DNA from: Piromyces finnis finn
Taxonomy: Eukaryota > Fungi > Neocallimastigomycota
Direction of reading: 5' to 3'
Assembly: GCA_002104945.1 (NCBI GenBank)
Contig: MCFH01000052.1
Location: 248,001 to 312,000 of the forward strand
DNA length: 64,000 nt
The notes below the pieces were generated by a model. It worked only from the letters and a program-made list of their open reading frames with translations, made no database searches and was not told the DNA's origin. Positions 3,501 through 64,000 of this stretch are shown one piece after another. A program made the position numbers and the translations under genes. Positions within the stretch are counted from its first letter, which is position 1. Each line of letters begins with the position of its first letter.

Positions 3501-4113
3501 ATTACGTATTAATTATGTTTTTATTATTGTATTAAGCACGAATAGAATAGGAATCGGTATTTTAAGGTTTTCCCGATTGTGCCTTAAGGAGGCATTCGGT
3601 TTTTCTTAAAATTACACGATGATCAATATGATTAGAATATTGATCGAAAATCATGTTTAGGTTTTTCTTCTAGTCTTTTCCTAAACATTTCATTTGTTAA
3701 GATTAGAACCCATTTTATTTAACCTTATTTTTTAATAAAATTATAAATAAAACACTCTTGAAATTCCTTAGAAATTCAAGAGTTATTATTATAAAGGAAT
3801 ACATTATAATAAATAACACAAATACATTTATTCTTTTTTTTAAAAAAAACATTCTTCTAATAAACCAATAATTAATAGATAATAAAAAATTAATTAAATA
3901 ACTTCCGCTCCATTTAACCCTTAGTGTTTATTTGTTTATTATAAATCTTTATAATTAACTCGATAAGTTTTTCATTCTCTATTTTCTATTTTAATTTTAT
4001 TCAATATTTCTTATTTTTGCATATTATATATATATTACTACAATATTAATAGTTAATATTATATTGTAGATAGTAATTTTTAATATTTAAAACAAATAAG
4101 AAATTACTACAAA

Positions 4114-5147
4114 TGTAAAAGGTTTATTATAAAATTAGTTGATAAGTTATCACTATTTAGTTAATTAAGTTAGTTATTACCTTTCTATACGAGATAATAA
4201 CTAAATAAAGTTTTATAAAAAATAATAAAAGAACTAAAATGAATATTATAACACAAAACTAAATATAAACAAATAAATATTATTATGAAATAAATTTACT
4301 TAAATTATTTTTAATTATATCTTTTATTTATTATTTATAATTATTATACATTAATTATTATTATAGTTATTAATTCACTTTAATACTAACGCTAAAGTAT
4401 TTAACGTTAGTTTATGCTATACTATTTAACTATAGTAGTTTATTTTCTTTACCACTTGATTGGGTAGAGCAAATAAACTTTCTATTTAATTAATAACCAT
4501 TAATATATGGTTATGCATATATCTAGCCACTAAATGGTAGCCAGAATATATGGTTTCAATTGTGTAAAAGTTTTACTAAACTTATAATTTAATATTAAAA
4601 TATTAAATTAAATAAAAGATTAAAAGATAACTAGGTTAGAAAATAATTTTAATTAAAACAATAATTTATATCCTTTTGAGTGAATGATTTATGTTTGATA
4701 CATCAGGGGTGATCATTCTCTGAATAAGCAATTAATCATTACTAACAAAATATCTTTAAATTGGAATGTCTCGTGAACCAGCAGAGATATTGACCTGATT
4801 TTAAGATATATTGTTTATCTCAAGCGTATTTCCCAAAACACATTTATCCAAAATCGCTATTCGTTGTCGAGTTACGATTGTTTTTCCTTATTAAATTATG
4901 ACGATAAGGGTTAAAGTTATTTATTATAAAATTATTAAAGGTTAAGGTCGTATCTTAACCTTTTCTAAATTTTTTAAATATTTCTTAATATAATTTTATA
5001 ATTTATTTGGAAATAAAATATTGTTGATTTTGAAATTTTATAAGTAATTTCACAATTTCAAGTGATCTTGAAATTGCAGATTTCACTAGTATTTGTGACA
5101 AATTAAAATATTTGTGGGCAAACTTATGGTCACTAATATTTCTGTAA
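4114..5147. mobile_element. Decayed LTR family E with nested LTR-B
   Basis: Collinear with 60373-60867. Right end degenerate, TSD not recoverable. Confidence 0.65.
4563..5100 (-). mobile_element. Solo LTR-B, internally deleted (538 bp)
   Basis: TGTAAAAGTTTTAC...GTGACA, TSD AATTG/AATTA. The empty site AATTG is visible at 60821-60825. Confidence 0.85.
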
Positions 5148-5322
5148 AATATTGTATTAATAGAATAATGTATTTAATATGTATTTAAAATAATGTATAA
5201 TGTATTAAATTAATGTACCGTAAATTTTACAAAATTTACATCACAATACATTAACATAAATTTATGAAAAATTTATTTTATGATAAGATAAAGTTTTTGA
5301 TGATAAAATAAAATTTTAAATT

Positions 5323-5598
5323 AAATAATTTTTAACCAATAAATATTTTAGATAATAAAAAAATTTTTTTATAAATTAAGCCTCAAAATTAGAAATAAAT
5401 AAATTAAATATATGTTTGAAATATAATCAACCATATAGTAAATAAATCAAAACTTTATTTAAATAATTTTTAACCAATAAATATTTTAGATAATAAAAAA
5501 ATTTTTTTATAAATTAAGCCTCAAAATTAGAAATAAATAAATTAAATATATGTTTGAAATATAATCAACCATATAGTAAATAAATCAAAACTTTATTT
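5323..5598. repeat. Perfect tandem duplication, 2 x 138 bp
   Basis: CCTCAAAATTAG at 5381 and 5519; the two units look identical by eye. Confidence 0.9.
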
Positions 5599-11596: not shown

Positions 11597-11766
11597 GTAA
11601 TAGTTATTTAAAAAAAATTTAGTAATTGACAAGAGAAAAAGAGAATAGAAAATAAAAAATGAAAAAATATATTTATAATTTAATATTCATGTAAAAAAAA
11701 ATTTTTTATCAAAATGTATTCACTCATTTTAATTATTTATTTTTATAATAAAATAACAACTAAATT

Positions 11767-12786
11767 TATTAAGTTTTGGGGTTTGGTTATGTGGCCAGGT
11801 CAGAATGTTTTAATTATATAGTAAAAAATGTTTTTTTAAGAAATTAAATTTAAATATAAAATAACACTTTAAACTTCCAAATGAAAAATTAATATTTATT
11901 TTTTTAAAATAGCTTTTTATAAAATTTTATTTATTTAGTAATAATAATATAAATGATAATATATTTAATAACTATATAATTAAGATTATAACTATAATCT
12001 TTACAAAGGATTAAAATCGAATTCAATTCATTCTCTTTTATATTTTTTGTTCAGATTATTAAATTGATAAAAATAAAGTATTACATGTAATATATTAATA
12101 ATATAATTAAATAAGTAATAAGATTGTTTGTTTGTTTGTTTGTATGTTTGTTTGTCATGACATAAAAATAAAATAAACATAAATCATTTAAACCCTTGAT
12201 CCGTTAACCTATTTTATAATAATTAGAATTATTTAATTTATAGATGTTAACTGTTACACCTAAATGGTTTAGTTCTATTTTTAGTAATAGTCATTATCAT
12301 TAATTAAATTAATATAATTAAAATTTCTATTGATAAATTCTTAATTTTTGTAAAGTCATAAGAAATATTTATGATCCATACTTGATATTCTATTGATTTT
12401 AATATACCAATTAAAATCTTTGAATGATCATAACTTCTTTAAATGACCAGTTAGAAGGACCGCGATTGTACCAAAATATAGCTTTTCCTTTAAGCTTTCT
12501 AATAAACTTGGTTTCACAGCCAACGCTACGGCCGTAGTACATACAGCCGTAGCGTTCGTTTTTGGCGAGTTATGCCTTGTTTCATGTTTGTTTATTTTTG
12601 GCTAATGGTTAAAGTGTATTGATATTAAATTTTTGAAATCATAACCCTTTCACTGAATCAAAATTTAAAAGGTGACTTTTAAAGGTGTTTTAAAATAATT
12701 ATTGAAATTATTTAATTATAATTATTATGTTTAATTAATTATAGATATTATCTGAATTTGTTTTAAATCCAGTTAATATCTTCACA
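11767..12786 (-). repeat. Gypsy-2 3' LTR (family A)
   Basis: Plus strand reads TATTAAG (TG mutated to TA)...ATCTTCACA; PPT at 12787-12800. Confidence 0.9.
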
Positions 12787-13166
12787 ACGCCCTCCCTAGG
12801 AATTCGTATTCCAGACGAATTCTAGAAACTGGAGCGAGAAATAAAAATTTTTGATTTTAAAAAATTTTTACGAGAGGAAGTAATAATTTCAAAAGGTCAC
12901 TTGGTCATTGTGAGATTTTTTGAAATTTCACTTTTTGAAAAATTTTCTTGTTGATAAAATTTTAATAATAAAAATGATAATAGAAATAAAAAATAATTAA
13001 GTTTTAATATAATAATTGAAAAATATTAAGTGTAAAAATTTTGAAATTTCAACATTTCAAAATTTTGTGATGAGTTAAATTTCGAAATTTAGTTGTTATA
13101 AAAATCTTTTGTAAATGGCGTAAAAATTATTTTTTGAGAATCATTGACTTATTAATGTTGATTTAA

Positions 13167-16100
13167 TTAATTATATGCTATAGAAGCATAATGTCGTCCA
13201 CTTTTTAAATGTTTTTGATAAATGAATTGGTTACATGGATTGTCTTCTACTTCACTTGCTGGTACTCAATTGTAAGTGGGGCGGTATTTATATCGAATTT
13301 TATATTCATATCATTGTTGTTTATAATTTGTACGGAATCCAGATATTTCAACTATATCTTTTATTGATTCTGGATCAGCAATTATATTTAAAAATTCTTT
13401 TGGAGTTGGTTTATAAGGTTACAACTCAGATACATGAAATATTGGATAGTGTTTGGGGAAAGGTGATTTTTTGATATCAATTTCATAATTGTTATTTCTT
13501 AAAACTTGTGTTATTTTATATGGACCATATTTGCAAGGAGCTAATTTGGAACTATTTTCGATATTTAGAGAAGGTGGGGCTTGAATCCAAACTAGATAAT
13601 CAATTTTAAATTTTGGAGCTTCTAAACGACTTCTATCCACTCTTCTTTTATACAATTCTTTGGAGCGTAGTAACACTTCTTTTATGTGGTTGAATGCATC
13701 ATTAACGTTTTGAACTAGTTTATGATTAATATTACATTGTGGTAATAGGGTCATTTCATCCATCGGAGGATGAAAACCATAATTAATGAAGAATGGTGTT
13801 TCTTTGGTTGATTCATTAACAGCATTGTTATAAGCGAATTCTGCAAGTGGAAGCCAGTCAACCCAGTCGTCATGATAGAAAGACTTGGAATAACATCTAA
13901 GATACTGTTCAATAAAAGAATTTGATCTCTCAACCTGTCCAACAGTTTCATGGTGGTCAGTAGTAGCTATTCTTGGATGAATATATAATAAATCCAAAAA
14001 TTCGAGCCAAACATCACTTGTAAATTGCGAGCCTCTATCAGTATATAGGTCATAAGGGAGACCATGTAAACGATATACATTATTCAAAAAAGCTTTTACA
14101 GTCTGTGCTGCATTTGGAATTTGTTTAAACGGAACTAGGTGAATCATCTTGGAAAAGCGGTCAACCACTACCATAATAACGGAGTACCCTTTAGACTCAG
14201 GAAGGCCACAAATAAAGTCAATCTCTATAGATTTCCATGGACGTTCTGGAGTATCTAAAGGTTGCAATTTCCCATACTTACGATGTCTAGTTACTTTATT
14301 TCTTGCGCATGTTCCTCAAGAATTAACAAATTTAGTGACATCATCCTTAATTTTAGGCCACCAAAAATTTCGAGTTATCAATTCTAAAGTCCTTTTTATA
14401 CCAAGATGTCCAGCAGAGGGTTGTTCATGATATTTCATAAGAACATCTAAACGTAGTTTTTCAGGAATATAAACTAAATTATTATATAGAATAAGATTAT
14501 TTTTTAATTCAAACTTGTTCATTTTCCTAAATGGTTTATAAGCCTTTTGGTCATTATATGGGCTGAAATATAACATAATATCCTTAGCGGTTTCATCGTC
14601 CTTTAAGTATTGAATAACTTGTTCCAAGAAGTTACTCATGATACCTATGAAGCTTGGTATTAGTTTTACATTTTTTGAGTCTAAAATAAATTCTGGCTTT
14701 ACTTCATAAGTCTTATCCATGTAGTCAGGTCTGCGAGATAGACTATCAGGTTTACCATTCTTACGACCTTTTCTGTATATAAGTTCAGAATCGTATTCTT
14801 GAAAGAAAATGTGCCAACGATGTTGTCTTTGATTACCTACCTTTCCTCCAAGAGTATAAAGTAAGTTTCTATGATCAGTGTAAACTTTTATTTTGTACTT
14901 AGCACCAAGAAGAAGGTGCCTCCAAGTAGAGAAAGAATCCTTAATGGCTAATAATTCTTTATCTGTTATAGAATAGTTAACTTCAGAACTACTGAGACTT
15001 CTGGAGTAGTAAGCAACAGGATTTAAACGATTTTCTGAATCATATTGAGATAGTATAGAACCAATAGCAACATTACTTGCATCACATTCTAAAATATATT
15101 GTTTTTGAGGATCAGGATGTGATAAAATAGGTGCGGAAGTTAAACGAGTTTTTAAAATGTTAAATGAGGATTCACATTCTGTAGACCACTTGAACTTTGC
15201 ATTCTTTTTTGTTAAGTTGTGGAGGGGTTTAGCCAAGTCTGCAAAATTCATTACAAAGCGTCTATAGTAGTTGCAAAGACCTAAAAATCTTTGTACATCC
15301 TTAACTGTGGTAGGAGTAGGCCAATTTTTGATTAATTCTATCTTTTTTGGGTTGGTAGCAATTCCTGAACCTGAAATAACATACCCTAAGAATTCAACTT
15401 GTGGTTTGTCGAATTCACATTTAGTAAGCTTAGCATACAAATTATTTTCTAATAGTTTAGAAAGAACTTCACGTACATGTTAGTGGTGTTCTTCTATGGT
15501 TTTTGAAAATATAAGAATATCATCCAAATAGAGAATAACAGATTTTTCTAAGAAAGGTCTGAGAACAGAATTTATAAATGCCTGGAAAGTAGCAGGAGCA
15601 TTGCGTAAACCAAATGGCATCACTAAATATTCATAGTGAACAAATTTTGTGCGAAAAGCAGTTTTATATTCGTCACCATTTCTTATTCTAACTAAATTAT
15701 AAGCAGAGCGTAAGTCGAGCTTGGTGAAATAATTTGCACCTTTGACACGTTCGATAATGTCGGTAATAAGTGGTATTGGGTAGGAATTACGTATCGTTAC
15801 AGAATTGAGTTTTTATAATCAATACAAACTCTAAGAGTACCATCTTTCTTTTTCTGAAACACCACTGGATATCCTGCGGGTGATTCGGATGGTCTAATAA
15901 AGCCTTTTTTTAAATTTTCCTTGATATACTCTTCTAAAACTTTTGATTCTTCTTCTGAAAAAGGATAGATGGGACCATAATGAAGAGTAGCATCTTTTTC
16001 TAGTACTATTTTGCAATCTGTAATTCTATGTGGCGGTAGTTTATCAGCTTCTTGTTTGCTGAAAACTTTTGCCAAATCTCGATAGGGTTCTGGAATATCC

Positions 16101-17974
16101 TCAATAGTATGTTCTTCTAAATTGCTTACTTCTTCTGGTTTTTCGGACAAAAAAGTATGAATTAAATAATTATAATTATATCTATCATAATTATTTTTAT
16201 TTAATATAACTTTTTTAGAAAATTTGGAACGTTTAGATTTGAATTTGTGGAATCGACCATTTTTCTTCTTCTTAAAGGTTTTGGATCTGAAATAAAAATT
16301 ATGAATTTTATTTTTTAAATTATAAAAAGTAGCGGAATATTTTTTATTATTATTTACACCTGTAGAAGTGGTAGGTGTAGTATTCTTATCATTTCTATTA
16401 TGAGAAATAAATTTTTCTAAATTTAAAAACTTAGTAGTATGCTTCATATTGAATTTCTTTTTGTTAAAATCATTTTAAATTTGAATATAAATATTTTTAT
16501 TATAATTATAATGAATTTCATATTTGGACATGAATATATTTCCAAATAATAAATCTGTCGGAATATAATCCGCTAGTAAAAATTTTTCTTTGAAATGATG
16601 AAATGAAATTTATTGTTGATAAATAGTTTTAACTGGAAGTTTAGGTTGATATATTCATCAAGTTCAATTGAAGTACCACTGATACCTTGTACAGTGATAA
16701 CATTATTCATTTTATGAGAATGTAATTGTAATGTACGTAATAGTTTGTACGACATAAAATTACAATAAGATCCACTATCTAATAGTGATGTACATATAGT
16801 TTTATTATGTATTTTATTTGTACCTCCATTATTGGATAATATATATGTATTAAAAGTAAAAAATGTTGGAGGTAATGTATTATCTTTATTGATAATGGGA
16901 AAAGTGTAGTTTAATATTTTTATATTCGAGTGGTGATGGGACTTCAATGGAAGTCCTTTATTTAGTTTTTTGAACTAATTTTTTGAGCCTTATAATTGTT
17001 GTTATAGTAATTATTATTATGTTTTTGGAAGTTATTGTTATTGTTGTTATTGTATGGTCTGTGGTGGTTGAAATGTGAATTTCTTTTCTTGTTAGACTTG
17101 GAACTAGAAAACTGGTTAATCTTATTCTTTGTAGAAAGAGAACTTTCAATCAAAATACATCTAGTTATAATGGACTCCATAGTGGTTGGAAATACCTCCA
17201 TCTTTTCAATTTCTTCTGATATTTTGGATGTAACCCATTGTAAAAGATTAAAGATAATGCTTCTTCATTCCATTTAAATTGTTGTGAAAGAGAGCAGAAT
17301 TCTTCGATATAATCATTAATTTTACCATATTGTTGTTTTAAACACATTATTTTGATTTTAGCTATCTTGTAACTAACAGTATTGGAGAAAGCAATTCTTA
17401 ATCCATCCAATAATTCTTGCATGGTAGCTGGATAAATATTATCCATGTACTTGGCAAGATACCAATTTCTAGCAGCATCACGAAGACGGAATTGTACAAA
17501 ATTAATTTTTGTTTCTTCTGGTAAAGTTCGATTTGGTAGAGTTTTAAAAGTATCTTCACATAATTGACAAAATAGATCGGTATCACTAGTCTTACCGGAA
17601 AACATACCTGGATCTGGGACTTGAGTAATTGGAGTAGCAAAACGACCTCTCATGATAACATCATGATCTAAATCAAATCTTGAAGTAGATTCATCATCTC
17701 TAAAGGCATTAGGTCTTGGAGTAGCTATCCTATCATAATTGTTATGTAACAATGGTTGTTCATCTTCATTCCGAGTAGCTTGACTATTATTCATACTGGT
17801 TAATACTCCCATGATTTCATTTAAACGATTATTCACATCATTGGAAAAATTTTGAAAATCTTCACGGAAAACCAAATTTTCATTGATACCCTCAATGATA
17901 TCTTTGGCAGTCTGAGTAGCATCCTCTCTAAGTTGGTTTACCTCGTCTGGGAAGTTAGGAACTGGAGTAAACAT
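13167..17974 (-). pseudogene. gag-pol: Gypsy-2 gag-pol, disrupted
   Basis: Gag MFTPVPNF...RLRDAARNWY with no CCHC seen, LLDSGS protease, RT (SPAGYPVVFQKKKDG; YLDD), RNase H, integrase (EIDFI, TDRG, VERSN, GPY) and a divergent chromo-like tail. Confidence 0.92.
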
Positions 17975-17998
17975 TTTAAAGTAGCCACTAAACTGCGG

Positions 17999-18009
17999 GT
18001 AAAGATTAT
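17999..18009 (-). promoter_or_regulatory. Gypsy-2 primer-binding site ATAATCTTTAC (self-priming type)
   Basis: Abuts the 5' LTR. Perfectly complementary to GTAAAGATTAT inside LTR-A (11994-12004, minus). Confidence 0.75.
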
Positions 18010-48828: not shown

Positions 48829-49456
48829 TGTTAAGGATCTAAGATGAATTTAGGTAAGTTAGGTCAGAATGCCCTAACCCTACTTATTAATTTGATATAA
48901 ATTATGTTTTATTATCATACTTTTATTTATTAATAAATTTATTAATACATCTTATTAATCAAACATTTTATTAATTCACTAAATAGAGTTATCAAACTTA
49001 ATGATTTTTCGAAAAGTTCAATTGTTGAATTAAATTCGAGTATTTATAATTTTTAAATTAATTAATAAATAATTAATCTATTTAATAAAGTTACATTAAT
49101 TATAAAATACATGATTTCAATTTTAATATAATTAACTATTCTATAAATTAAAATATATTAAATATTTATATAATGACTTTAAGCTTATGACTTTTCTTTA
49201 TTTAATTGCTTAAGTCATCTCAATCATTTGAGGGAGGAATGACTAACTATTTCATTTATTTAAATTTCCTTCCACATCAAATGAACAAAGAGATATTATT
49301 TAAACTTTAATAAATATAAAATCTTAATAATTATAATTAATAAATATCTCTAAAAATATTGTTTAATAATGTTTTATAAAATTATTACTCCTAATTAATT
49401 AAATGAATAAAACATTATTTAAATAAATTATCATGAATCCACTAATGTTCATGATA
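48829..49456 (-). mobile_element. Solo LTR-D (628 bp)
   Basis: TGTTAAGG...CATGATA (CA mutated to TA), flanked by TCGTG/TCGTG; shares GGTCAGAATG with A and C. Confidence 0.75.
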
Positions 49457-49922
49457 TCGTGTGTTAAATTTTGGGATTTGGTTATGCGGCCAGGTCAGAA
49501 TGTTATTAATTATATAGTAAATATGTTTTTTAAGAAATTAAATTTAAATATAAAATAACACTTTAAACTTCCAAATGAAAAATTAATATTTATTTTTTAG
49601 AATAACCTTTTATAAAATTTTATTTATTTAGTAATAATAATAATAATAATATTGTGAACATTTATGGACACATAATTTTATTTATCTATATCATATATTT
49701 ATTACACACGTGACTATTTTATAAAAACATAAACATGTATTAAAAGTGTTGTAAACGTAATGTCTACGTGTTGTAGAGAAAGTTATTTTTTATTTATTTT
49801 ATTTTATTTTTTATGGTCACATGACCTTACATCTCATTATATAACTGTAATATTTACAATGTAACTTTTTCTCTTTGTTAACCTTATTAATAAAATTATT
49901 TATTAATTAAATTTATTTCACA

Positions 49923-49937
49923 GATTAAGAGTCTCAA
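49923..49937 (+). promoter_or_regulatory. Copia-1 PBS GATTAAGAGTCTCAA
   Basis: Abuts the 5' LTR; reverse complement TGAGACTCTTAATC matches the tRNA-Lys(CUU) anticodon stem-loop. Confidence 0.75.
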
Positions 49938-50006
49938 ACTCTAATCAATAATAAAAATTTCTTAAGAAAAATTTAAAACAAAATTTTGTGTATTAAAAAT
50001 TTTAAT

Positions 50007-53000
50007 ATGTCCCAACAATTCATTTTAGCCAATGACCAACGTCTTCATGGAAAGTCCAACTTTGATACTTGGAGTCTTTTAATCAAGGCAGCCGCCACTA
50101 GACAGGGTCTAACTAGCTACCTTGAACAAGACATAGTTGGAACCATTAAAGACAACAACTTTGAGATAAACCTTAATCTCAAAGATGAATATAATATGGC
50201 TATTATGAGGATTATTGCTGAAGCCGCGGACTACCGTCCTAACAGCAATCTTGCGTCTGTTTATAAAACCCTCATTAAGACTACGGGGGAGGACGCCAAT
50301 ACAAGCAGCAACATTAATAACAATGTTGTAGCCGCCAATAAATTGGCAAACTTGTCAATTTATAAGGCCGAGATTATATCAGCGGCTGAAAAGCTAAATG
50401 CTGATACTTACCTTATGATCATTCAAAATGTGGATGAGAAGATCCTCAGAGAGATTGGTCATAGTTCCAATAGTTACCAAGTATTCAAAAAGTTGAATAC
50501 AAAATACGGTAACGCCAATGCAGACATTGAATACTGGCTAAAGAAGTTAAGAAAATTACATACAGAAGATGTAAGCAAAGTCAGTAAAACAATCGATAAA
50601 ATCAAGGAAATCTTCCTTGAGATGTCTGAATTAAAAATGTCCTTAAGTGAAAGGGAAAAACTAAAATATATGTACAATTCCCTTCCAAGAAGTGTCAAGA
50701 ACCAAGTAAGTGTAACCTTAGATGAAACTTATGATCAGCTCTATGAGAAGGTCAAAAGTTATATCAACGCCAAATCCTACTTCGAAGATTGGACCAACAA
50801 CGACCAAGATGAAGATGACGAAGTTGATGATCCAATGGATGTTGATTTTGTTAGTAGAGAAAACAAATCAACAAAGAATAAAAGCTACGGTAATAGAAGA
50901 AATATAAACAGAAGTCACCGTACCTACTGCCATATCTGTTGTGAACATGGACACTCTACCGAAATGTGTGAATACAACCAAAAGGCCAAAATGGAAAGGG
51001 ACCAAAGAAAAAACAACAACAGGGCCTTTAACCAAAGTAAACAAAAGAGAAATTCACAACAAGGGAGGCAAGTTCACAAGAAAAAACAACAAAAGAAATT
51101 CGAACAAGAAGTAGATTTCGTCGAAGACTATGACGATAATGAAAATTATGGAATTAACGTAGAATTCGAAGATATCAGACCTCTGACAGAAAGAAATATC
51201 TACCTAATTGAAAAGGATGAAGTTACAGAGGAAGACACTCCTAACACAAAGGATATAGATTATGTGTATGGAGAAAATAAATACGACGAATGGTTCTATG
51301 ATACTGGTGCCGCCGAACATATCGTTAATAATAAGGACATTCTAGAGAACTTCACAGAAGAGCACATTCAACTTAGATGTGCAAATGGAACTACATGTGA
51401 ATTTAGTGGTTATGGTTCATATGAGTTTAAGGTAAAAGACAAAACTTACAAGTTAGAAAAAGTTTTGTACTCAGACAAAGTTAGCAAGAATTTAATTAGT
51501 GGTGTAGGACTTGCTAAAGTTGGTTTAAGAAGCATTATAGATATTACTGATGATGGAAAAGTCAGGCTTATTTTCAAGGACTCTGAAAATAAAAATATAA
51601 TGCAAACGTATTCAAATGAATTAAACCAATTTAAAATTAAGCTCATAAACATTGATAAAAAGATAAATGAACCATTTATTGCAAATTTTGAAGATGATTT
51701 AGGTATATGGCATAAGAGATTAGGCCATTTCTACCAGAAGGATCTGAAGAAATACCTAAAACAACATAAAATTAAAGTAACTCCTTGCCTAGACTGTAAA
51801 ATATCTAAAATGAAGAAGTCTCCACATAACAAAACTGTACCCAAAGCCGGAAGAGTTCTAGAGACTATTCACTCCGATATTTCAGGCCCGTTTAATTCAT
51901 CCGTCAATAATAAGAAGTATTTTATGACTATGCTGGATGAATACTCAAGAAAACTCTGGATTTATACTCTCAAGTCAAGGTCTGAGGCACCGGACATTAT
52001 TAATGAATTCCTAAAGAATGCCAATAATACTTTTGACAAATATAAAGTCAAAACATTCAAGACAGATGGTGCAAAAGAGTATAATAGTAGTAAAGTTATA
52101 AAATATTGTAAGGAAAACGGTATATCTAAGATAAATTCACCTCCTTACATACATGAATTAAATGGTAAAGCAGAAAGAATAAACCAAACAATTCAAAATT
52201 CTGCTAAAACGCTTTTATATTGGGCTAAATTATCTGAAGACTTTTGGAGTTTTGCTGTTAAATATTCTTGTTATATTTACAACAAAATACCACACCAAGG
52301 AAACGATAACTTAATTCCTGATGAAGTGTTTACGAACGAGGAAGCCGATCTAAAATACCTAAAGGTATTTGGATGCATATGCTACTTTAAGGACTATTCT
52401 CTTAAAAAGTCAAAATTCGCGCCTAACTCGAAGGAAGGAATATTTCTTGGGCTCAGTGAAGCACATCACTCATATATCGTCATGGAGATATGTGGTGATA
52501 AACTTAAAATCCACTATTCTAGGGAAATAGAATGCTGTGAAGATAAGCCGGCACATTATAATTATAAAAATAAAAATATAAACGATCCGTATTTCTCTTT
52601 CAATGATTCATATAATATCAATAATTACGACAGAAAGGACCCCTCAGAATCATCAAAGAACAACAACAATACGGATACAAATTCAATCATAAATAAAGAA
52701 AATAATAACACAGAAAGGACTACTTCCAAGAAAATGGTGAATATCCACTCCAAATATAAAGACGAAGAGATAACTACCAAAGAAAAAGAAGAAACTAATA
52801 TAAGGACTAATATTAATTCCAAAATTGAAGAAAATTCAAAAAACAATTTAAACAGTAATTTAAAAAGCGACACTCAAACCAATAACAAAAATAATAATTC
52901 AAATTCGAAATTTAATAAAAATAAATTTACAAATGACATTTTAAAAGTTTTAGAAGAAATTGCAAATGACAATTGCAATTTCGAAAAGAAAAATTGCAAA

Positions 53001-55166
53001 ATTTCTAATAATATTGACGAAAATAATAAATACCAATATCCTGTAACTCCTGGTCCTGATTACGTTTGTTATGGTAATACTCTTGCCGACAAAAACAAAA
53101 ATGAAATCATTAAAAATCCTGAATATTATAAAAATTCTCCTACTGAATATTCTACCACCGAAAATATTTCCTATACCAAAAATACTGGTGAAAATACTAC
53201 TGAATATCCTAATACTGATCATAGTGAAAAAAATTTTATTAATAAAAATTTTTCAAAAATTCAAATTAAAAATGAAGACATTCTATTGGATGATAAACCA
53301 AATAATCCACGTCATAATTCTAGCAAAAATTCTAACGTTACACAGGATAATTCTACCTACTCTGATAATATTCACATTGATGATACTAAAAATTTAAATT
53401 CAAAAATTTCTGATTCTCCTGATATGACACGTGATTCCCATTCTTATATTTCAGATGACAATAAATCTATGGATGATCCTGATCCAAACTTGGAAGATGA
53501 AAATGATATCATGGATGATATCATGGCCGATAAATCTGATGATTCCTACCATCCTGAAAGAAAAAGGCCTTGCAGTCCTACCTCTCTGAATAATTCCAGT
53601 ACTCCTAAGAAGCACAAAAACAAATTTATAGCTACCGTTTTTACTGATGCTCCCACTACGTACAAAGAAGCTATGTCTTGTACGAATTCTAAATATTGGA
53701 AAGCAGCCATTCAAGATGAATTAAATAATTTATATTCTAACAAAATTATGTCCCTGGTTAAAAATATCCCAAAAAACAAGAATATTATATCTACCAAATG
53801 GGTTTTTGCTGTTAAAAGGGACAGCAATAATAATATTGTACGTTTTAAAGCTAGACTTGTCGCTAGAGGTTTCCGTCAAAAACAAGGTATTGATTTTGAC
53901 TTAACCTATTCCCCTACATTAAATATTGACAGCCTAAAATTTATTATTGCTATTGCTGCAAAATTTAAGTGGGATATATATCAGCTTGATATAAAAGCTG
54001 CCTACCTCAATGCTCCATTGGATACAGATATTTATACCACAATTCCGCTTGGAGATAGCACCTTTGGGGGAGGATACTGGAAGCTGAATAAAGCTCTCTA
54101 TGGTTTAAAACAATCAGGAAGACAATGGAATAAAACAATAGATAAATTCCTGAAAAATAATAACTTTAAACCATTAAAATCCGAACCATGTATTTATACG
54201 TTAAAAGAAAATAAATACGTAAAATGTATAATTGGTCTATATGTAGACGACATGGTTATAATTGGAAAAACAAATACAATAGAGAGAGTAATAAGCAAAA
54301 TTAAAAGTAGATTTAAAATATCAAATAGCGGCCCTATTAGTTACATTCTAGGAATAAAGATTGAAAAGAAAGGATCCAAATACATTATTTCCCAAGAGAA
54401 TTACATTAATAATGTATTACAAAGATTTCATATGGAAAACGTACGTAGAAGAAATACGCCATGTACAACAACCGACAAGAACACCTCAAATAATAACCAA
54501 TTTGATAAAACAAAATATAAAAGTGCAATAGGTGCATTAATATATCTGTCAAAATGTACAAGACCGGATATAGCGTTTGCAGTAAACAAAGCTGCAAGAA
54601 AATCTGAAAATCCAACAGTATCTGACTGGAATACAATTGTAAATATTTTCAGATACATATCTACTACCAAACATTACAAAATCGAATACAGTGGAGAAGG
54701 AAAAATACAAGGATACACTGATTCGGACTACGGAGGCGCAGAAGACTTTAAATCTACCTCTGGAGGGATAATCCTAATGGGAAATAGCCCAATATGCTGG
54801 TTATCCAAGAAACAAACTTGTGTGGCAACATCTACCGCTGAGGCTGAGTACATTAGTACGTCCATGAATACGAAGAAAATCTTATGGATCAAAAACATGG
54901 TGGACGAAATTTTTAATTACAACAAAAATATAACTTTATTCACCGACAACAAAGCAAGCAAGAAAATAATAGAAAACGGTGAAATAAACACAAAGTTAAA
55001 ACACATAAATATACACTACCACTTCATTATTGACAACATAGAAAAGAACAATATAAAAATCGAATATGTAAATACTAAAGAAATGTTAGCTGACCCTCTA
55101 ACTAAAGATCTACCTGGTCCAAGAATGTTTGATTATACAAATAAGATATTCTTAAAGAAAATCTAA
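50007..55166 (+). CDS. gag-pol: Copia-1 Gag-Pol polyprotein (first ATG at 50007; track ORF starts at TTG 49986)
   Basis: CHICCEHGHSTEMC, YDTGAA, WHKRLGH, HSDISG/TDGAKEY/AER integrase, KARLVARGF, YVDD, TDSDY...AEAEY...ADPLTK. Confidence 0.98.
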   Translation: MSQQFILANDQRLHGKSNFDTWSLLIKAAATRQGLTSYLEQDIVGTIKDNNFEINLNLKDEYNMAIMRIIAEAADYRPNSNLASVYKTLIKTTGEDANTSSNINNNVVAANKLANLSIYKAEIISAAEKLNADTYLMIIQNVDEKILREIGHSSNSYQVFKKLNTKYGNANADIEYWLKKLRKLHTEDVSKVSKTIDKIKEIFLEMSELKMSLSEREKLKYMYNSLPRSVKNQVSVTLDETYDQLYEKVKSYINAKSYFEDWTNNDQDEDDEVDDPMDVDFVSRENKSTKNKSYGNRRNINRSHRTYCHICCEHGHSTEMCEYNQKAKMERDQRKNNNRAFNQSKQKRNSQQGRQVHKKKQQKKFEQEVDFVEDYDDNENYGINVEFEDIRPLTERNIYLIEKDEVTEEDTPNTKDIDYVYGENKYDEWFYDTGAAEHIVNNKDILENFTEEHIQLRCANGTTCEFSGYGSYEFKVKDKTYKLEKVLYSDKVSKNLISGVGLAKVGLRSIIDITDDGKVRLIFKDSENKNIMQTYSNELNQFKIKLINIDKKINEPFIANFEDDLGIWHKRLGHFYQKDLKKYLKQHKIKVTPCLDCKISKMKKSPHNKTVPKAGRVLETIHSDISGPFNSSVNNKKYFMTMLDEYSRKLWIYTLKSRSEAPDIINEFLKNANNTFDKYKVKTFKTDGAKEYNSSKVIKYCKENGISKINSPPYIHELNGKAERINQTIQNSAKTLLYWAKLSEDFWSFAVKYSCYIYNKIPHQGNDNLIPDEVFTNEEADLKYLKVFGCICYFKDYSLKKSKFAPNSKEGIFLGLSEAHHSYIVMEICGDKLKIHYSREIECCEDKPAHYNYKNKNINDPYFSFNDSYNINNYDRKDPSESSKNNNNTDTNSIINKENNNTERTTSKKMVNIHSKYKDEEITTKEKEETNIRTNINSKIEENSKNNLNSNLKSDTQTNNKNNNSNSKFNKNKFTNDILKVLEEIANDNCNFEKKNCKISNNIDENNKYQYPVTPGPDYVCYGNTLADKNKNEIIKNPEYYKNSPTEYSTTENISYTKNTGENTTEYPNTDHSEKNFINKNFSKIQIKNEDILLDDKPNNPRHNSSKNSNVTQDNSTYSDNIHIDDTKNLNSKISDSPDMTRDSHSYISDDNKSMDDPDPNLEDENDIMDDIMADKSDDSYHPERKRPCSPTSLNNSSTPKKHKNKFIATVFTDAPTTYKEAMSCTNSKYWKAAIQDELNNLYSNKIMSLVKNIPKNKNIISTKWVFAVKRDSNNNIVRFKARLVARGFRQKQGIDFDLTYSPTLNIDSLKFIIAIAAKFKWDIYQLDIKAAYLNAPLDTDIYTTIPLGDSTFGGGYWKLNKALYGLKQSGRQWNKTIDKFLKNNNFKPLKSEPCIYTLKENKYVKCIIGLYVDDMVIIGKTNTIERVISKIKSRFKISNSGPISYILGIKIEKKGSKYIISQENYINNVLQRFHMENVRRRNTPCTTTDKNTSNNNQFDKTKYKSAIGALIYLSKCTRPDIAFAVNKAARKSENPTVSDWNTIVNIFRYISTTKHYKIEYSGEGKIQGYTDSDYGGAEDFKSTSGGIILMGNSPICWLSKKQTCVATSTAEAEYISTSMNTKKILWIKNMVDEIFNYNKNITLFTDNKASKKIIENGEINTKLKHINIHYHFIIDNIEKNNIKIEYVNTKEMLADPLTKDLPGPRMFDYTNKIFLKKI

Positions 55167-56361
55167 TTTGAGGGGGAGTGTGAACATTTATGGACACATA
55201 ATTTTATTTATCTATATCATATATTTATTACACACGTGACTATTTTATAAAAACATAAACATGTATTAAAAGTGTTGTAAACGTAATGTCTACGTGTTGT
55301 AGAGAAAGTTATTTTTTATTTATTTTATTTTATTTTTATGGTCACATGACCTTACATCTCATTATATAACTGTAATATTTACAATGTAACTTTTTCTCTT
55401 TGTTAACCTTATTAATAAAATTATTTATTAATTAAATTTATTTCACAAATATAAATGATAATATATTTAATAACTATATAATTAAGATTATAACTATAAT
55501 CTTTACAAAGGATTAAAATCGAATTCAATTCATTCTCTTCTATATTTTTTGTTCAGATTATTAAATTGATAAAAATAAAGTATTACATGTAATATATTAA
55601 TAATATAATTAAATAAGTAATAAGATTGTTTGTTTGTTTGTTTGTTTTGTCATGACATAAAATAAAATAAACATATGATTAATCATTTAAACACTTAATC
55701 CATTAACCTATTTTATAATAATTAAAATTATTTAATTTATAAATGTTAACTGTTACACCTAAATGGTTTAGTTCTATTTTTAGTAACAGTCACTATCATT
55801 AATTAAATTAATATAATTAAAATTTCTATTGATATCTTTTTAATTTTCGTCAAGTCATAAGAAATGTCTATGATCCATACTTGATATCATATTAATTTTA
55901 ATTTACTTATTAAAATCTTCAAATGACCATATCTTTCTTAAATGACCAGTTAGAAGGACCGCGATTATACCAAAATATAGCTTTTTCCTTAAGCTTTCTA
56001 ATAAACCCGGTTTCACAGCCGTAGTACTTATAGCCGTAGCGTTCGTTTTTGGCGAGTTATGCCTTGTTTCGTGTTTGTTTATTTTTGGTTAAGGGTTATA
56101 GTGTATTGATATTAAATTTTTGAAATCATAACCCTTTCACTGAATCAAAATTTAAAAGGTGACTTTTAAAGATGTTTTAAAATAATCATTGAAATTATTT
56201 AATTATAATTATTATGTTTAATTAATTATAGATATTATCTGAATTTGTTTTAAATCCAGTTAATATCTTCACATCGTGTTTATTCAGTTAGTTTTTATTA
56301 TGTTTTTATGTGAGTAGTGTTTCAAATAATGATAAATAATTAAATTTATAAATTATGAATT

Positions 56362-56407
<46 letters not shown>

Positions 56408-56878
56408 TTAAAACATAGATAGTTAAAAATTAAAATAATTAATATGTATAAAATTATTAAATTAAAAACTATAAATGTAAACTTTTTGTCTATTTAATTG
56501 TTTATTTATTTTTAAATTAAATAGTTTATATTTGTTTATAATTATACTTTAAAATAATAATTTTGTATAAATAGTAATAGAAAATGTTCTTTTTAAAAGA
56601 TGTTCCTATGTTCCTAATAATCCAGTAAAATTAGATAATAATATTAAATTTTATTAAAATAATAGTTGTGATTATATTTACATACATTCAAGATGTATTA
56701 AACCATATATTTAATAATACAAGAGTTATTAAATATTAAAACTTTATAATTAAATAAAATAATTTTATATTTTAAACTAACAAAGACTTGCAAATGAACA
56801 AGTATAAAAATCATTTATTCTATTTTTATTTTCTTATTTATTTTTATTTATTAAATTTTAGATACAAATATTATCACT

Positions 56879-58027
56879 TGTAAAAGTTTTACTAAACTTA
56901 TAATTTAATATTAAAATATTAAATTAAATAAAAGGTTAAAAGATAACTAGGTTAGAAAAAAAAATGTTTTATTAAAATAATCTTAATTGATTTATAAATG
57001 AATAATTAAATTATATATTATGGTTAAAATAATTTCTTTTATTTTATTTAATGATATATTGCTAAAATATATAATAATAAGATTATTTAGTAGTAATACT
57101 CATTAAGTATTAATTATTATTAATAGTTAATAATTTCTAGTTAATAATCTATAGCTAATAATTCATAGTTAATAATTTATAGTTAATAATTTATAGTTAA
57201 TAATTTATAGTTAATAATTTTTGGTTAATAATCTTTACAAAGATTTTAATTTCATAACTATTCTAAACTATTTATACTATTTGTAATTTTACATTTAATA
57301 ATAAAATAACTTTTCAATACATGATTATATTCATAATATATTTTATAATACTTAAACTAAACTTAAGACTTATTCCTAATTATTAAAAAATAACTATTGT
57401 TTATAATATTCATAATATTAATTATTTCTTAATTATGATATAATTCATTGAATATAATATTAATAATTATAATCCTCTAGTTCAAAGATTATAAATTATG
57501 TTATTGAAATAATTATTATAAAATAAAGTTAATTAGTTCCGGAAAATAATTTTAATTTAATTAAACAATAATTTTTATACTTTGAGTGAATGATTTATGT
57601 TTGATATATCAGGGGTGATCATTCTCTGAATAAACAATTAATCATTGCTAACAAAATATCTTTAAATTGGAATATCTCGTGAACCAGCAGAGATATTGAC
57701 CTGATTTTAAGATATGTTGTTTGTCTCGAGCGTGGCTTTCTAACGAATGTAATTATAACCAAAATATTTTTATTCAAAAATCGTCATTCGTTGAGGAGAT
57801 ACGCGTGTTTTTCCTTATTCCATTTTAACGATAAGGGTTAAAGTTATTTATTATAAAAATTATTAAGGGTTAAGGTCATATTTTAACCTTTTCTAAATTT
57901 TTAAATATTTCTTAATAAAATTTTATAATTTATTTGAAAATAAAATATTTGTTGATTTTGAAATTTCATAAGTGATTTCACAATTCCAAGTGATCTTGAA
58001 ATTGTATTTTCACTAGTATTCGTGACA
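56879..58027 (-). mobile_element. Solo LTR-B (1149 bp)
   Basis: TG...CA, flanked by TCACT/TCACT. Confidence 0.92.
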
Positions 58028-58032
58028 TCACT

Positions 58033-59164
58033 TGTTAAGTTTTTGGGTTTGGTTATGCGGCCAGGTCAGAATGTTATTAATTATATAGTAAAAATGTTTT
58101 TTAAGAAATTAAATTTAATTATAAAATAACACCTTAAACTCCCAAATGAAAAATGAAAAATTTATATTTACTTTAAAATAACTTTTTATAAATTTTTTAT
58201 TTATTTAATAATAATAATATAAATGATATTATAAGTAACTATATAATTAAGATTATAACTATAATCTTTACAAAGAATTAAAATCGAATTCAATTCATTC
58301 TCTTTTATATTCTTTGTTCAGATTATTAAATTGATATTAATAAGAATAAAGTATTACATGTAATATATTAGTAATATAATTAAATAAGTAATAAGATTGT
58401 TTGTTTGTTTGTTTGTTTGTCATGACATAAAATAAAATAAACATATGATTAATCATTTAAACAGTTGATCCTAATTAGTAATTATAAAAACTATTCAATT
58501 AATAATTCATCATTATTAATTGATATTACCATAACATATTTGTTATAATTAAATAATTATTATTTTCAAAATTATTTCTAATAAAACTTGCCGTTAACCT
58601 ATTTTATAATAATTAAGATTATTTAATTTATAGGTGTTAACTGTTACACCTAAATGGGTCTAGTTCTATTTTTAGTAACAATCGTTATCATTAATTAAAT
58701 TAATATAACTAAAATTCCTATTGATATATTTTTAATTTCATCAAGTCATAAGAAATATTTATGATCCATACTTGATATCATATTGATTTTAATTTACCTA
58801 ATAAAATCTTTAAATGATCATAACTTCCTTAAATGATCAGTTAGAAGGACCGCGATTGTACCAAATTGTAGCTTTCTTCCTAAGCTTTCCAATAAACCTA
58901 GTTTCATCACCGTAGCACTTACAGCCGTAGCGATCGTTTTTGGCGAGTTACACCTTATTTCGTACTTGCTTATTTTTGGTTAAGGGTTATAGTGTATTGA
59001 TATTAAATTTTTGAAATCATAACCCTTTCACTGAATCAAAATTTAAAAGGTGACTTTTAAAAGTGTTTTAAAATAATTATTGAAATTATTTAATTATAAT
59101 TATTATGTTTAATTAATTATAGATATTATCTGAATTTGTTTTAAATCCAGTTAATATCTTCACA
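58033..59164 (-). mobile_element. Solo LTR-A (1132 bp, with ~120-bp internal insert)
   Basis: TG...CA, flanked by TCACT/TCACT. Confidence 0.92.
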
Positions 59165-59169
59165 TCACT

Positions 59170-60315
59170 TGTCACGAATACTAGTGAAATTACAATTTCA
59201 AGATCACTTGGAATTGTGAAATCACTTATGAAAATTCAAAATCAACAAATATTTTATTTTCAAATAAATTATAAAATTTTATTAAGAAATATTTAAAAAT
59301 TTAGGAAAGGTTAAAATATGACCTTAACCCTTAATAATTTTTATAATAAATAACTTTAACCCTTATCGTTAAAATGGAATAAGGAAAAACACGCGTATCT
59401 CCTCAACGAATGACGATTTTTGAATAAAAATATTTTGGTTATAATTACATTCGTTAGAAAGCCACGCTCGAGACAAACAACATATCTTAAAATCAGGTCA
59501 ATATCTCTGCTGGTTCACGAGATATTCCAATTTAAAGATATTTTGTTAGCAATGATTAATTGTTTATTCAGAGAATGATCACCCCTGATATATCAAACAT
59601 AAATCATTCACTCAAAGTATAAAAATTATTGTTTAATTAAATCAAAATTATTTTCCGGAACTAATTAACTTTATTTTATAATAATTATTTCAATAACATA
59701 ATTTATAATCTTTGAACTAGAGGATTATAATTATTAATATTATATTCAATGAATTATATTATAATTAAGAAATAATTAATATTATGAATATTATAAACAA
59801 TAGTTATTTTTTAATAATTAGGAATAAGTCTTAAGTTTAGTTTAAGTATTATAAAATATATTATGAATATAATCATGTATTGAAAAGTTATTTTATTATT
59901 AAATGTAAAATTACAAATAGTATAAATAGTTTAGAATAGTTATGAAATTAAAATCTTTGTAAAGATTATTAACCAAAAATTATTAACTATAAATTATTAA
60001 CTATAAATTATTAACTATAAATTATTAACTATGAATTATTAGCTATAGATTATTAACTAGAAATTATTAACTATTAATAATAATTAATACTTAATGAGTA
60101 TTACTACTAAATAATCTTATTATTATATTTTAGTAATATATTATTAAATAAAATAAAAGAAATTATTTTAACCATAATATATAATTTAATTATTCATTTA
60201 TAAATCAATTAAGATTATTTTAATAAAACATTTTTTTTCTAACCTAGTTATCTTTTAACCTTTTATTTAATTTGATATTTTAATATTAAATTATAAGTTT
60301 AGTAAAACTTTTACA
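59170..60315 (+). mobile_element. Solo LTR-B (1146 bp), opposite orientation
   Basis: Near-perfect reverse complement of 56879-58027; flanked by TCACT/TCACT. Confidence 0.92.
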
Positions 60316-60372
60316 TCACTTTCTATATTCCTTTATAGAATTAAGATAATATCCTCTTCGTATCAATAAATT

Positions 60373-60867
60373 TGTAAAAGGTTTTTATATATATTAGTTA
60401 ATAGGTTAAGTATAACAAGTTAATTAAGTTAGTTATTACCTCTCTATACGAGTTAATAACTAAATAAAGTTTTATAAAAAATAATAAAAGAACTAAAATA
60501 AATATTATAACACAAAAATAAATATAAAACAAATAAATATTAATATGAAATATTATTTACTTAAATAATTATTATAATTATTATCTTTTATTTATTAGTT
60601 ATAATTATATACATTAATTATTATTATAGCTATTAATTTACTTTAATACTAACGCTAAAGTATTTAACGTTAGTTTTAACTATACTATTTAACTATATTA
60701 GTTTATTTTCTTTACCACTTGATTGGGTAAAGCAAATAAACTTCCTATTTAATTAATAACCATTAATATATGGTTATACATATATCTGGCCAATAAATGG
60801 TGACCAGAATATATGGTTTCAATTGAAATATTTGTGGGCAAACTTATGGCCACAAATATTTCTTACA
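60373..60867. mobile_element. Solo LTR-E (495 bp; empty AATTG site)
   Basis: TGTAAAAGG...TTCTTACA; homologous to 4114-5147. Confidence 0.75.
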
Positions 60868-61447
60868 ATGATAAATAATTAAATTTATAAATTATGAATT
60901 TATAATAATAATAATAATAATAATAATATTAAAACACAGATAGTTGAAAATTAAAATAATTAACATGTATAAAATTATTAAATTAAAAACTATAAATGTA
61001 AACTTTTTGTCTATTTAATTGTTTATTTAGTTTTAAATTAAATAGTTTATATTTGTTTATAATTATACTTTAAAATAATAATTTTGTATAAATAGTGATA
61101 GAATTATTTTATTTTAAAAGATGTTCCTAATAATCCAGTAAAATTAGATAATAATATTAAATTTTATTAAAATAATAGTTGTGATTATATTTACATACAT
61201 TCAAGATGTATTAAACCATAACATATATATATTTAATAATACAAGAGTTATTAAATATTAAAACTTTATAATTAAATAAAATAATTTTATATTTTAAACT
61301 AACAAAGACTTGCAAATGAACAAGTATAAAAATCATTCATTCTATTTTTATTTTCTTATTTATTTTTATTTATTAAATTTTAGATACAAATATTATCACT
61401 TTCTATATTCATTTATAGAATTAAGATAATATTTTCTACGTATCAAA

Positions 61448-61458
61448 TGGTGGAGAAT
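61448..61458 (+). promoter_or_regulatory. PBS TGGTGGAGAAT complementary to a tRNA-Ala 3' end
   Basis: Implies a primer ending AUUCUCCACCA, i.e. A73 and U70 (G3:U70 is the Ala identity pair). Confidence 0.75.
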
Positions 61459-62775
61459 CCAAAAATCTACTGAGTAGCTAGTCTTAAGGCCGGAGGGAAT
61501 TACGTGAACCTCTCTGTTCCCCATAGAAAACTACTACTACTGCATCAGTTTTAACAAAATTTAATTAATTTCAGAATTAATTAAAAATCGGAATTAACAA
61601 TACTTCAACAATATATATTAATATATTCCAATATATTATTAATATATATAAAAAAAAAATTTCACAAATATTTAATTCCAATAATTAAATAAATAACATT
61701 AATATCAAAATTTTAAATATTCAAATTATTTAAAATAAAATTAGTATTATAATACAAAAACATTATAATATAATTCAATTATAAATCCATAATCAATTAT
61801 AATATATACCAATTATATATTATAAAATAATAAAATTATAATGTATATTTCACTCATATAGAAAAACATTATATTCCAACTGCCCTGCTCTTCTGAAAGC
61901 CTTTAAAAATTTCAAAATAATCTGTGGATAATGGAATAAAAGTATCAGAAAATAAACTTTAAATAATAATAAACCTTAAGTAAGCTTTAATTAATGTGGA
62001 TATAAATGAAGAATAAAATTATTTGAAAAAGACACTGCAGCTACTATTAAAAACTATCCGGAAAATTATATATTAAAAATAAATTAATGGAGGACAATAA
62101 AAATTAAACATGCATATAAAGAAAGAAAAAAGAAAATCCTAAGAAGAAGAAGAAGTAATAAAATGAAGAACTTTAATTACTTATAAAATTTAATTCTTTA
62201 TCTATTATTTTTCCTTTCGTAACTTCAAGGGACGAAGTTATATCTTAAGGGCGAAGATATTGATAAATAATTAAATTTATAAATTATAAATTAATAATAA
62301 TAATAATAATAATTAAAATATAGATAAAAATTTAAAATATTTAACATGTATAAAATTATTAAATTAAAAATTATAAATGTAAACTTTTTGTTTATTTAAT
62401 TGTTTATTTCTTTTTAAATTAAATAGTTTATATTTGTTTATAATTATATCTTAAAATAATAATTTTGTATAAATAGTGATAGAATTACTTATTTTTAAAA
62501 AAATGTTCCTAATAATCCAGAAAAATTAGATAATAATATTAAATTTATTAAAATAATACTTATAATTATATTCACATACATACCGAGATGTATTCATAAT
62601 AAAATATATATTTAATAATACTAGAGTTATTAAATATCAAAATTTATAATTAAATAAACTATATTTTATAAAACTAACTAATACTTGAAAATGAACAAGT
62701 ATAAAAATCATTTATTTTTATTTTCTTTAAATTTTATTTATTAAATATTATTTTTTAGATACAAATATTATCACT

Positions 62776-64000
62776 TGTAAAAGTTTTACTAAACTTATAA
62801 TTTAATATTAAAATATCAAATTAAATAAAAGGTTAAAAGATAACTAGGTTAGAAAAAAAAAATGTTTTATTAAAATAATCTTAATTGATTTATAAATGAA
62901 TAATTAAATTATATATTATGGTTAAAATAATTTCTTTTATTTTATTTAATGATATATTGCTAAAATATATAATAATAAGATTATTTAGTAGTAATACTCA
63001 TTAAGTATTAATTATTATTAATAGTTAATAATCTATAGTTAATAATCTTTAGTTAATAATTTATAGTTAATAATTTTTGGTTAATAATTTATAGTTAATA
63101 ATTTATAGTTAATAATTTAATAATTTATGGTTAATAATTTTTGGTTAATAATTTATAGTTAATAATTTATAGTTAATAATTTAATAATTTATGGTTAATA
63201 ATTTTTGGTTAATAATTTATAGTTAATAATTTATAGTTAATAATTTAATAATTTATGGTTAATAATTTTTGGTTAATAATCTTTACAAAGATTTTAATTT
63301 CATAAACTATTCTAAACTATTTATACTATTTGTAATTTTACATTTAATAATAAAATAACTTTTCAATACATGATTATATTCATAATATATTTTATAATAC
63401 TTAAACTAAACTTAAGACTTATTCCTAATTATTAAAAAATAACTATTGTTTATATATTTATAATATTAATTATTTCTTAATTATAATATAATTCATTGAA
63501 TATAATATTAATAATTATAATCCTCTAGTTCAAAGATTATAAATTATGTTATTGAAATAATTATTATAAAATAAAGTTAATTAGTTCCGGAAAATAATTT
63601 TAATTTAATTAAACAATAATTTTTATACTTTGAGTGAATGATTTATGTTTGATATATCAGGGGTGATCATTCTCTGAATAAACAATTAATCATTGCTAAC
63701 AAAATATCTTTAAATTGGAATATCTCGTGAACCAGCAGAGATATTGACCTGATTTTAAGATATGTTGTTTGTCTCGAGCGTGGCTTTCTAACGAACGTAA
63801 TTATAACCAAAATATTTTTATTCAAAAATCGTCATTCGTTGAGGAGATACGCGTGTTTTTCCTTATTCCATTTTAACGATAAGGGTTAAAGTTATTTATT
63901 ATAAAAATTACTAAGGGTTAAGGTCATATTTTAACCTTTCCTAAATTTTTAAATATTTCTTAATAAAATTTTATAATTTATTTGAAAATAAAATATTTGT
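62776..64000 (-). mobile_element. LTR-B running off the window end
   Basis: Starts TGTAAAAGTTTTAC after TCACT (62771-62775); near-identical to 56879-58027. Confidence 0.9.
63021..63285. repeat. 14-bp minisatellite with 64-bp higher-order unit in LTR-B
   Basis: GTTAATAATTTATA units; TTTTTGG recurs every 64 bp; shorter arrays in the other LTR-B copies. Confidence 0.85.

Follow-up and report, generated by a model that had tools for sequence, protein, structure and literature searches.

Several long terminal repeat (LTR) retrotransposons are known to integrate at an exact spot upstream of tRNA genes. Ty3 of Saccharomyces cerevisiae, Tj1 of Schizosaccharomyces japonicus and DGLT-A of Dictyostelium all insert a few to about 15 nt before the gene, where solo LTRs pile up (PMC5911963; PMC4600332; PMC5006619). 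Here we analyse a nest of LTR retrotransposons from the gut fungus Piromyces finnis, in which LTRs of four families, A to D, lie inside older LTRs at an almost constant distance from one end. The nest fills a 64-kb stretch (hereafter the window; contig MCFH01000052.1 of assembly GCA_002104945.1, positions 248,001 to 312,000) of a 56.5-Mb, very AT-rich genome. The original prediction took this offset as a sign that the elements target LTR ends. Our results indicate that it is most likely a by-product of tRNA-gene targeting at two registers, and not of LTR-end recognition.

The registers described to date differ between types of element. In a 2018 review, tRNA-targeted LTR elements occupy positions 1-33 nt upstream of the gene or, in the case of Skipper-2, 8-23 nt downstream, or else insert over broad windows, and a register 40-64 nt upstream is listed for non-LTR elements only (PMC5911963); the Tj1 study (PMC4600332) and a survey of dictyostelids (PMC5006619) agree with these values. 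For the dictyostelid element TRE5-A, tethering occurs via TFIIIB (PMC5911963; PMC5006619). Among the Skipper chromoviruses of Dictyostelium, one subgroup has a canonical chromodomain and is not targeted to tRNA genes, whereas the other has a diverged chromodomain and is associated with them (PMC5006619). Our literature search returned no report of such targeting in Neocallimastigomycota or Piromyces. That a DNA-bound host protein can set insertion positions to the single nucleotide is known from Tf1 and Sap1 in Schizosaccharomyces pombe.

The LTRs of the present system fall into two classes. Class 1 comprises the host LTRs G, H, E, K, M, J1, x and Q, and class 2 comprises the inserted families A to D. 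Class 1 resembles Ty3, Tj1 and DGLT-A in ending 12-16 nt upstream of tRNA genes. The system as a whole departs from these three in that the host is an anaerobic gut fungus, the stacks reach about 50 kb and class 2 adds a second register. In register and divergent orientation, class 2 resembles the dictyostelid elements TRE5-A and NLTR-B. Both of these belong to the L1 type and rely on target-primed reverse transcription, however, while class 2 elements possess LTRs and an integrase, make 5-bp duplications and occupy a narrower interval of 63-67 nt; the TRE5-type organisation (non-LTR, ORF1 plus APE-RT) is not that of class 2. [quoted passage not shown] With Tf1, class 2 shares a Tf2-1-type SH3 domain in the integrase, although Tf1 targets Pol II promoters.

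Two integration registers upstream of tRNA genes

Each of the 11 class-2 junctions in the window was read directly in the sequence. A genome sample was then made up of 30 further copies each of LTR-A and LTR-B with their flanks, and the 20 kb past the window end were also examined. LTR copies of the Gypsy-3 family served as a negative control, and distances to tRNA genes were measured from the outer end of the class-2 LTR to tRNA position 1.

The predicted insertions are real. At all 11 junctions we find class-2 termini (TG..CA, in full TGT..ACA), 5-bp duplications and a host tail that places the insertion 42-47 nt from the end of the host LTR. Nor is the offset a peculiarity of the window, and the genome-wide check even strengthens it: 34 of the 41 placeable A/B ends in the sampled copies conform to it. 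Fifteen of the 41 adjoin a tRNA or tRNA-like gene, and a further 19 are followed by a 43-50-nt host tail, a spacer of 4-10 nt and the start of the next LTR. Six more A/B ends, which abut another class-2 LTR at the same duplication, were excluded from the 41.

Beside tRNA genes, the two registers are demonstrated by position, polarity and statistics. Class-1 LTRs end 12-16 nt upstream of tRNA position 1, and the outer end of A or B lies 63-67 nt before it in 13 events, 11 at called tRNA genes and two at a tRNA-like unit, where the distance was set by the A box. One reversed B was found at 65 nt from a tRNA-Glu. The genes used are those for Arg, Cys, Trp, Ser (two isoacceptors), Gly (two) and Glu, an intron-bearing tRNA and the tRNA-like unit. 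A narrow, fixed upstream interval and the use of many different tRNA genes are both features of Pol III targeting. Families C and D behave like A and B, in the window as well as in the sampled sequences L002 and L046.

The orientation bias proposed at the outset is also borne out, with U3 pointing towards the host end in 20 cases against 2 locally and in 19 against 0 in host family E. Pattern searches for class-2 ends in E tails across the genome recovered 27, with the duplication TGGTT in 20 and a site one base off in 6; the 19 exact ends comprise 13 B, 4 A and 2 C-like LTRs. The Gypsy-3 control copies showed no association with tRNAs or host tails, in agreement with the earlier exemption of this family from the rule. 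No Rfam family was detected near the unexplained flanks, even at E up to 1.

The tRNA-like unit is 75 nt long (ACTAAATTGTCTTAGTGGTTAGTAGC...AGTTCGAGACC...TTTT), with A- and B-box-like motifs and a terminal T-run, and is missed by both ARAGORN and Rfam. It was seen at L008:2698-2775 and in L026, L030, L038 and L082, and LTRs sit before it as they do before a tRNA gene. A separate observation concerns Gypsy-3: at L065:1065 and L077:1070 a Gypsy-3-like LTR start, without its first TGTA, is fused directly to the last bases of the M and Q host tails.

tRNA gene or LTR end as the positional reference

We propose that elements integrated time and again upstream of a tRNA gene and so built up each stack. 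Class-1 elements would integrate at the Pol III start site in the manner of Ty3, leaving an LTR that ends 12-16 nt before position 1, and class-2 elements would integrate 63-67 nt before it, almost always with U3 towards the gene. As the 14-nt register nearly always holds a class-1 LTR, the class-2 insertion would land 42-49 nt inside that LTR. A later class-1 insertion would then push the older composite away from the tRNA gene, leaving the fossil pattern seen deeper in the stacks. The tether is presumably the Pol III initiation complex, with class 2 positioned at the upstream edge of TFIIIB or at a phased neighbour and the integrase tail as its putative contact.

The original prediction offers a different account, in which a protein or nucleosome at the ends of LTRs, or where two LTRs meet, tethers the class-2 integrase, so that any older LTR would be hit 42-49 nt from its end, with or without a tRNA gene nearby. 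The constancy of the offset across at least eight host families speaks for this, as does the fact that 20 of the 27 hits in E fall on one nucleotide. Two events, however, keep their distance to the tRNA when the LTR end is missing from its usual place. In L034 (66 nt) and at the left end of L060 (65 nt), no LTR end lies 12-16 nt from the tRNA, and the flanks are low-copy sequences that co-occur with tRNA loci. Moreover, host-tail length (43-49 nt) and spacer (10-16 nt) are inversely correlated (r = -0.68, n = 13, permutation p = 0.003; p = 0.035 with the 11 events at called tRNAs only). Since tail and spacer compensate, it is their sum that is constrained.

The host ends themselves point the same way. 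In E and J1 it is U3 that faces the insertion, and a reverse-complement polypurine tract follows the other LTR; in G it is U5, and a sequence resembling a primer binding site (PBS), TGGTGGAGAATCC, follows the 5' LTR. The opposite end faces the insertion for J1 in L038 and for an E-like LTR in L036. The host tails share no sequence, and we found in them no common motif that might serve as a binding site. Nor is there any known physical mark on the end of an integrated solo LTR. Among the sequences examined, tails that abut the element's own internal region, and so are distal to the tRNA, account for none of the 28 hit tails as against 6 of the 20 unhit ones (Fisher p = 0.003). Taken together, the events at L034 and L060, the compensation and the use of either end indicate that an LTR end need not be present and does not set the distance, and we regard tethering to LTR ends as improbable. 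We also considered whether the insertion site could be the transcription start of the host LTR; this was rejected, as J1 and E face the tRNA with U3 but G does so with U5.

Of the original idea, the part that survives is tethered, position-exact integration with a strong preference for one orientation and a self-reinforcing build-up of stacks in a safe haven, while the LTR end as the recognised feature is not supported, given that the tRNA distance is kept without it. Similarly, the host end does always lie to the right in the window, as had been stated, but this is because a tRNA gene lies to the right. In other genome copies, tails of these same hosts often have a tRNA gene 12-16 nt further on.

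Several observations nevertheless weigh against targeting by the tRNA gene alone. Most events within the stacks cannot by themselves separate a tRNA rule from an LTR-end rule, and the sampled genome copies are skewed to young ones. Seven of the 41 A/B ends conform to neither arrangement, having unclassified flanks or tails of 31, 37 or 55 nt, and the B inserted in E in the window would have sat only about 60 nt from a tRNA. The remaining points concern tRNA-distal E LTRs. Junctions between the E tail and the E internal region, which mark tRNA-distal 3' LTRs, are uninterrupted in 48 of 50 cases. The other two (C159:22849 and C99:2750) carry a B end at TGGTT and are the only data that favour the LTR-end model. 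How they are read depends on the share of distal LTRs among all E copies. With the share found among the best-kept copies (11 of 40), two of 27 hits is a deficit (p = 0.01), which argues against LTR-end targeting; with 50 of 490 candidates (about 10%), it is what an LTR-end rule predicts, and the hit rate of distal LTRs is near the overall rate.

The distal hits also bear on a mixed origin, in which the Pol III tether sets the main register and a second route carries class-2 LTRs into further copies of one host LTR, giving occasional hits away from tRNA genes. That route could be homologous recombination of cDNA or between ectopic copies, gene conversion via the 49-nt tail, or a weak local sequence preference. 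If a hit solo E LTR crossed over within the 49-nt tail with an E cDNA circle, or with a different E copy, exactly the structure of the two distal hits would result. Entry of cDNA by homologous recombination is known for Ty1 (PMC5911963), and the window holds recombinant junctions (C at 39187-47331, A at 11766-19002 and the tail of G at 62257). We consider this combination quite unlikely, and the recombination route, if real, would add little to the main explanation and would not replace it. The two distal hits may, in addition, be one event in duplicated contigs. There is a slim chance that class-2 integrases, besides their Pol III tether, recognise a feature at the outer 45-50 nt of class-1 LTRs, such as a factor or chromatin state that LTR termini recruit. 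Insertion would then occur at one and the same nucleotide even when the LTR is far from a tRNA gene, of which the two distal hits might be examples. Were this true, it would amount to a retrotransposon that targets the ends of other retrotransposons.

A further caveat, raised from the start for duplication and conversion, is that copies at the same site might be one insertion multiplied by segmental duplication, by gene conversion or by retrotransposition of a composite LTR. In one instance this may hold: the A/H junctions ending at 18999 and 56273 lie within a single alignment of 93.8% identity (18186-19059 with 55448-56334) and may be one event. Identical junctions at matching offsets were also seen on several small contigs (C15, C78, C230 and C4; also C37 and C42), which means that the assembly has duplicated or alternative contigs and that genome-wide counts overstate the number of independent events. 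By retrotransposition, progeny would also inherit a class-2 LTR that lies inside the U3 of a 3' LTR. Against this, different families (A, B, C and D) occupy the same nucleotide, which makes the other same-site copies independent, and the same host site is filled beside different tRNA genes. No two hit E LTRs are spaced by one element length, and the insertion sites are spanned by uninterrupted, empty copies in G, H, E and M. As a general explanation, non-independence of the same-site copies is highly improbable and largely refuted. Two-register targeting of tRNA genes thus remains the reading we favour, and the one under which the window is described below.

Two stacks in the window

The window is a dense nest of Ty3/gypsy elements, Copia elements and solo LTRs (Table 1). 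It most likely consists of two one-sided LTR stacks, the first at a tRNA-Ser (21041) and the second at a tRNA-Gly/tRNA-Thr pair 6.8 kb past the window end. Neither the host tails nor the rest of the window yielded a further tRNA-like sequence or Pol III gene, even in a permissive Rfam scan; with these two anchors only, all host tails in the window point at one of them.

Table 1. Main features of the LTR nest, in window coordinates (TSD, target-site duplication; ORF, open reading frame)
Feature	Position	Strand	Details
Host LTR E (class 1), interrupted by solo LTR-B	4114..5142; B 4563-5100	+	TSD AATTG/AATTA, 42 nt to consensus E end
Old full-length class-2 element A	11766..19002	-	LTRs 11766-12789 and 18009-18999/19002, about 92% alike; ORFs broken
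TSD TCGTG and 46-nt tail of host LTR H	19000..19050	+	Followed by AAAA, then LTR M
LTR M (TGCTACGG..CCTTAACA)	19055..19904	+	Class-1 LTR of an element of about 6.2 kb, uninterrupted here
tRNA-Ser(UGA), anchor of first stack	21041..21122	+	
LTR-C in host K	28273..29499; C 28273-29451	+	TSD TAATA/TAATC; K tail 43 nt (29457-29499)
Solo LTR-A and 47-nt tail of x-like host LTR	30569..31621; A 30569-31569	+	TSD CTATT
Host LTR H copy 2, left part	32203..39186 (32203-33224 and 39153-39186)	+	Copia nested at 33224-39152
LTR-C copy 2 at TCGTG site of H	39187..47331	+	37 nt of C, Gypsy-3, remaining C with further insertion
H copy 1, hit at a single nucleotide by two class-2 LTRs	47761..56324	+	
G solo LTR with triple stack	56330..60365	+	B 56879-58027, A 58033-59164, reversed B' 59170-60315; G tail 45 nt (60321-60365)
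Solo LTR E (class 1), uninterrupted	60373..60866	+	7 nt past G tail
Non-autonomous G element	60869..64000	+	5' LTR 60869-61446; PBS-like TGGTGGAGAATCC at 61449; 3' LTR from 62257

The tRNA-proximal part of the second stack extends beyond the window. The 3' LTR of the G element is split at TCACT by an LTR-B that runs from 62776 to 75 nt past the window end, where the G tail follows, then the full element J1 and then the genes for tRNA-Gly and tRNA-Thr, 6836 and 6913 nt past the end. J1 is young, with a minus-strand ORF and a pair of 617-bp LTRs at 100% identity, and its end lies 14 nt upstream of this tRNA pair. The A copies of this stack have best identities of 99.9%, 96% and 92.7% with growing distance from tRNA-Gly, the solo LTR-A at 30569-31569 being the oldest (at most 92.7% identity to other copies). 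This age gradient, together with the young elements near the tRNA, fits a chronological stack. An apparent paradox, that a young B lies farther from the tRNA than old elements, proved unfounded: the B at 62776, the G at 60869, the E at 60373 and J1 all have relatives of 99-100% identity. The 14-nt tandem array in LTR-B (57113-57287 and 63011-63349) varies in copy number, which lowers the apparent identity between LTR-B copies that are otherwise 99-100% identical.

The G element closest to the window end is a non-autonomous element of about 1.96 kb, with an LTR of 578 bp and its PBS-like sequence 2 nt after the 5' LTR; the genome holds many G LTR pairs 1.38-1.40 kb apart. The left part of its 3' LTR (62257-62775) belongs to another subfamily (89.7% identity to the G at 60869), and its tail (L085:81-125) matches that of the G at 60869 at 45 of 45 positions. 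This LTR looks like a recombinant across the inserted LTR-B. Further in, the triple stack in the solo G consists of B, A and B' separated by TCACT alone.

In H copy 1, the order is the left part of H, TCGTG, D (48829-49456), TCGTG, A, TCGTG and the 46-nt H tail; the A is itself divided (49462-49652 and 55448-56273) by a nested Copia (49653-55450). The left part of this H copy (47761-48828) is 99.6% identical to an uninterrupted H (L085:8604-9671) downstream of the tRNA-Gly/Thr pair, which suggests that duplication or conversion took place recently between neighbouring stacks.

The second LTR-C, reported at 39187 as an insertion into H, needs qualification. C does start at the TCGTG site, but just the first 37 nt are LTR-C before Gypsy-3 begins (39224-45024; TSD GTCAG, canonical chromodomain), and the right flank is recombinant, consisting of TTGTA and the tail of another host. 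The old A element at 11766-19002, whose U3 points to the right, has no matching TSD on its left. With such mismatched flanks, both copies are recombinant. In the E copy split by the solo B, the E end is truncated where the next LTR begins at 5143; the site is intact in the empty E copy (60373-60866), which spans it. Finally, we considered whether AAAATGCTACGGTTCAAAT, which follows the H tail, could be a PBS or internal region, which would have made this H a distal LTR. The candidate was rejected, as the sequence is the start of LTR family M, pairs of which lie 6.17 kb apart.

Class-2 integrases and the meaning of the stacks

The proteins place class 2 in the Tf1-like or chromovirus branch of the Ty3/gypsy group (Metaviridae), with Gag, reverse transcriptase (RT), RNase H and integrase in that order and an SH3 domain of the Tf2-1 type. 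Fragments of the A element match gag, RT_RNaseH, Integrase_H2C2, rve and SH3_Tf2-1, the B tail matches SH3_Tf2-1, and the class-1 element J1 has the full domain set. The class-2 integrase ends in the Tf2-1-type SH3 domain and a tail of about 75 aa. In B, this tail has no Pfam Chromo match at E up to 10, and so lacks a canonical chromodomain; it is weakly similar to the Gypsy-3 chromodomain (33% over 52 aa; L031:2538-3119 examined), which itself scores 2e-18. There is a parallel here with Skipper-1 and Skipper-2, in that Gypsy-3 with its canonical domain is untargeted and class 2 with a degenerate chromo-like tail is targeted, although Skipper-2 lands downstream of tRNA genes and class 2 upstream. 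The class-2 tail is a natural candidate to make the targeting contact, and a further candidate for a re-purposed chromodomain of the kind proposed for Skipper-2.

Class 2 represents an integrase-bearing, Tf1-like group whose insertions fall 63-67 nt upstream of tRNA genes, in fixed orientation and precise almost to the single base, alongside a Ty3-like group at about 14 nt. Between them, the two groups pile up stacks of tens of kilobases, in chronological order, at individual tRNA genes, and such stacks could be used to order insertions in time. The class-1 and class-2 integrases form a natural pair for asking how position relative to the Pol III complex is set. More generally, the system carries a warning that fixed-offset insertion of one transposable element into another can reflect a shared external anchor.

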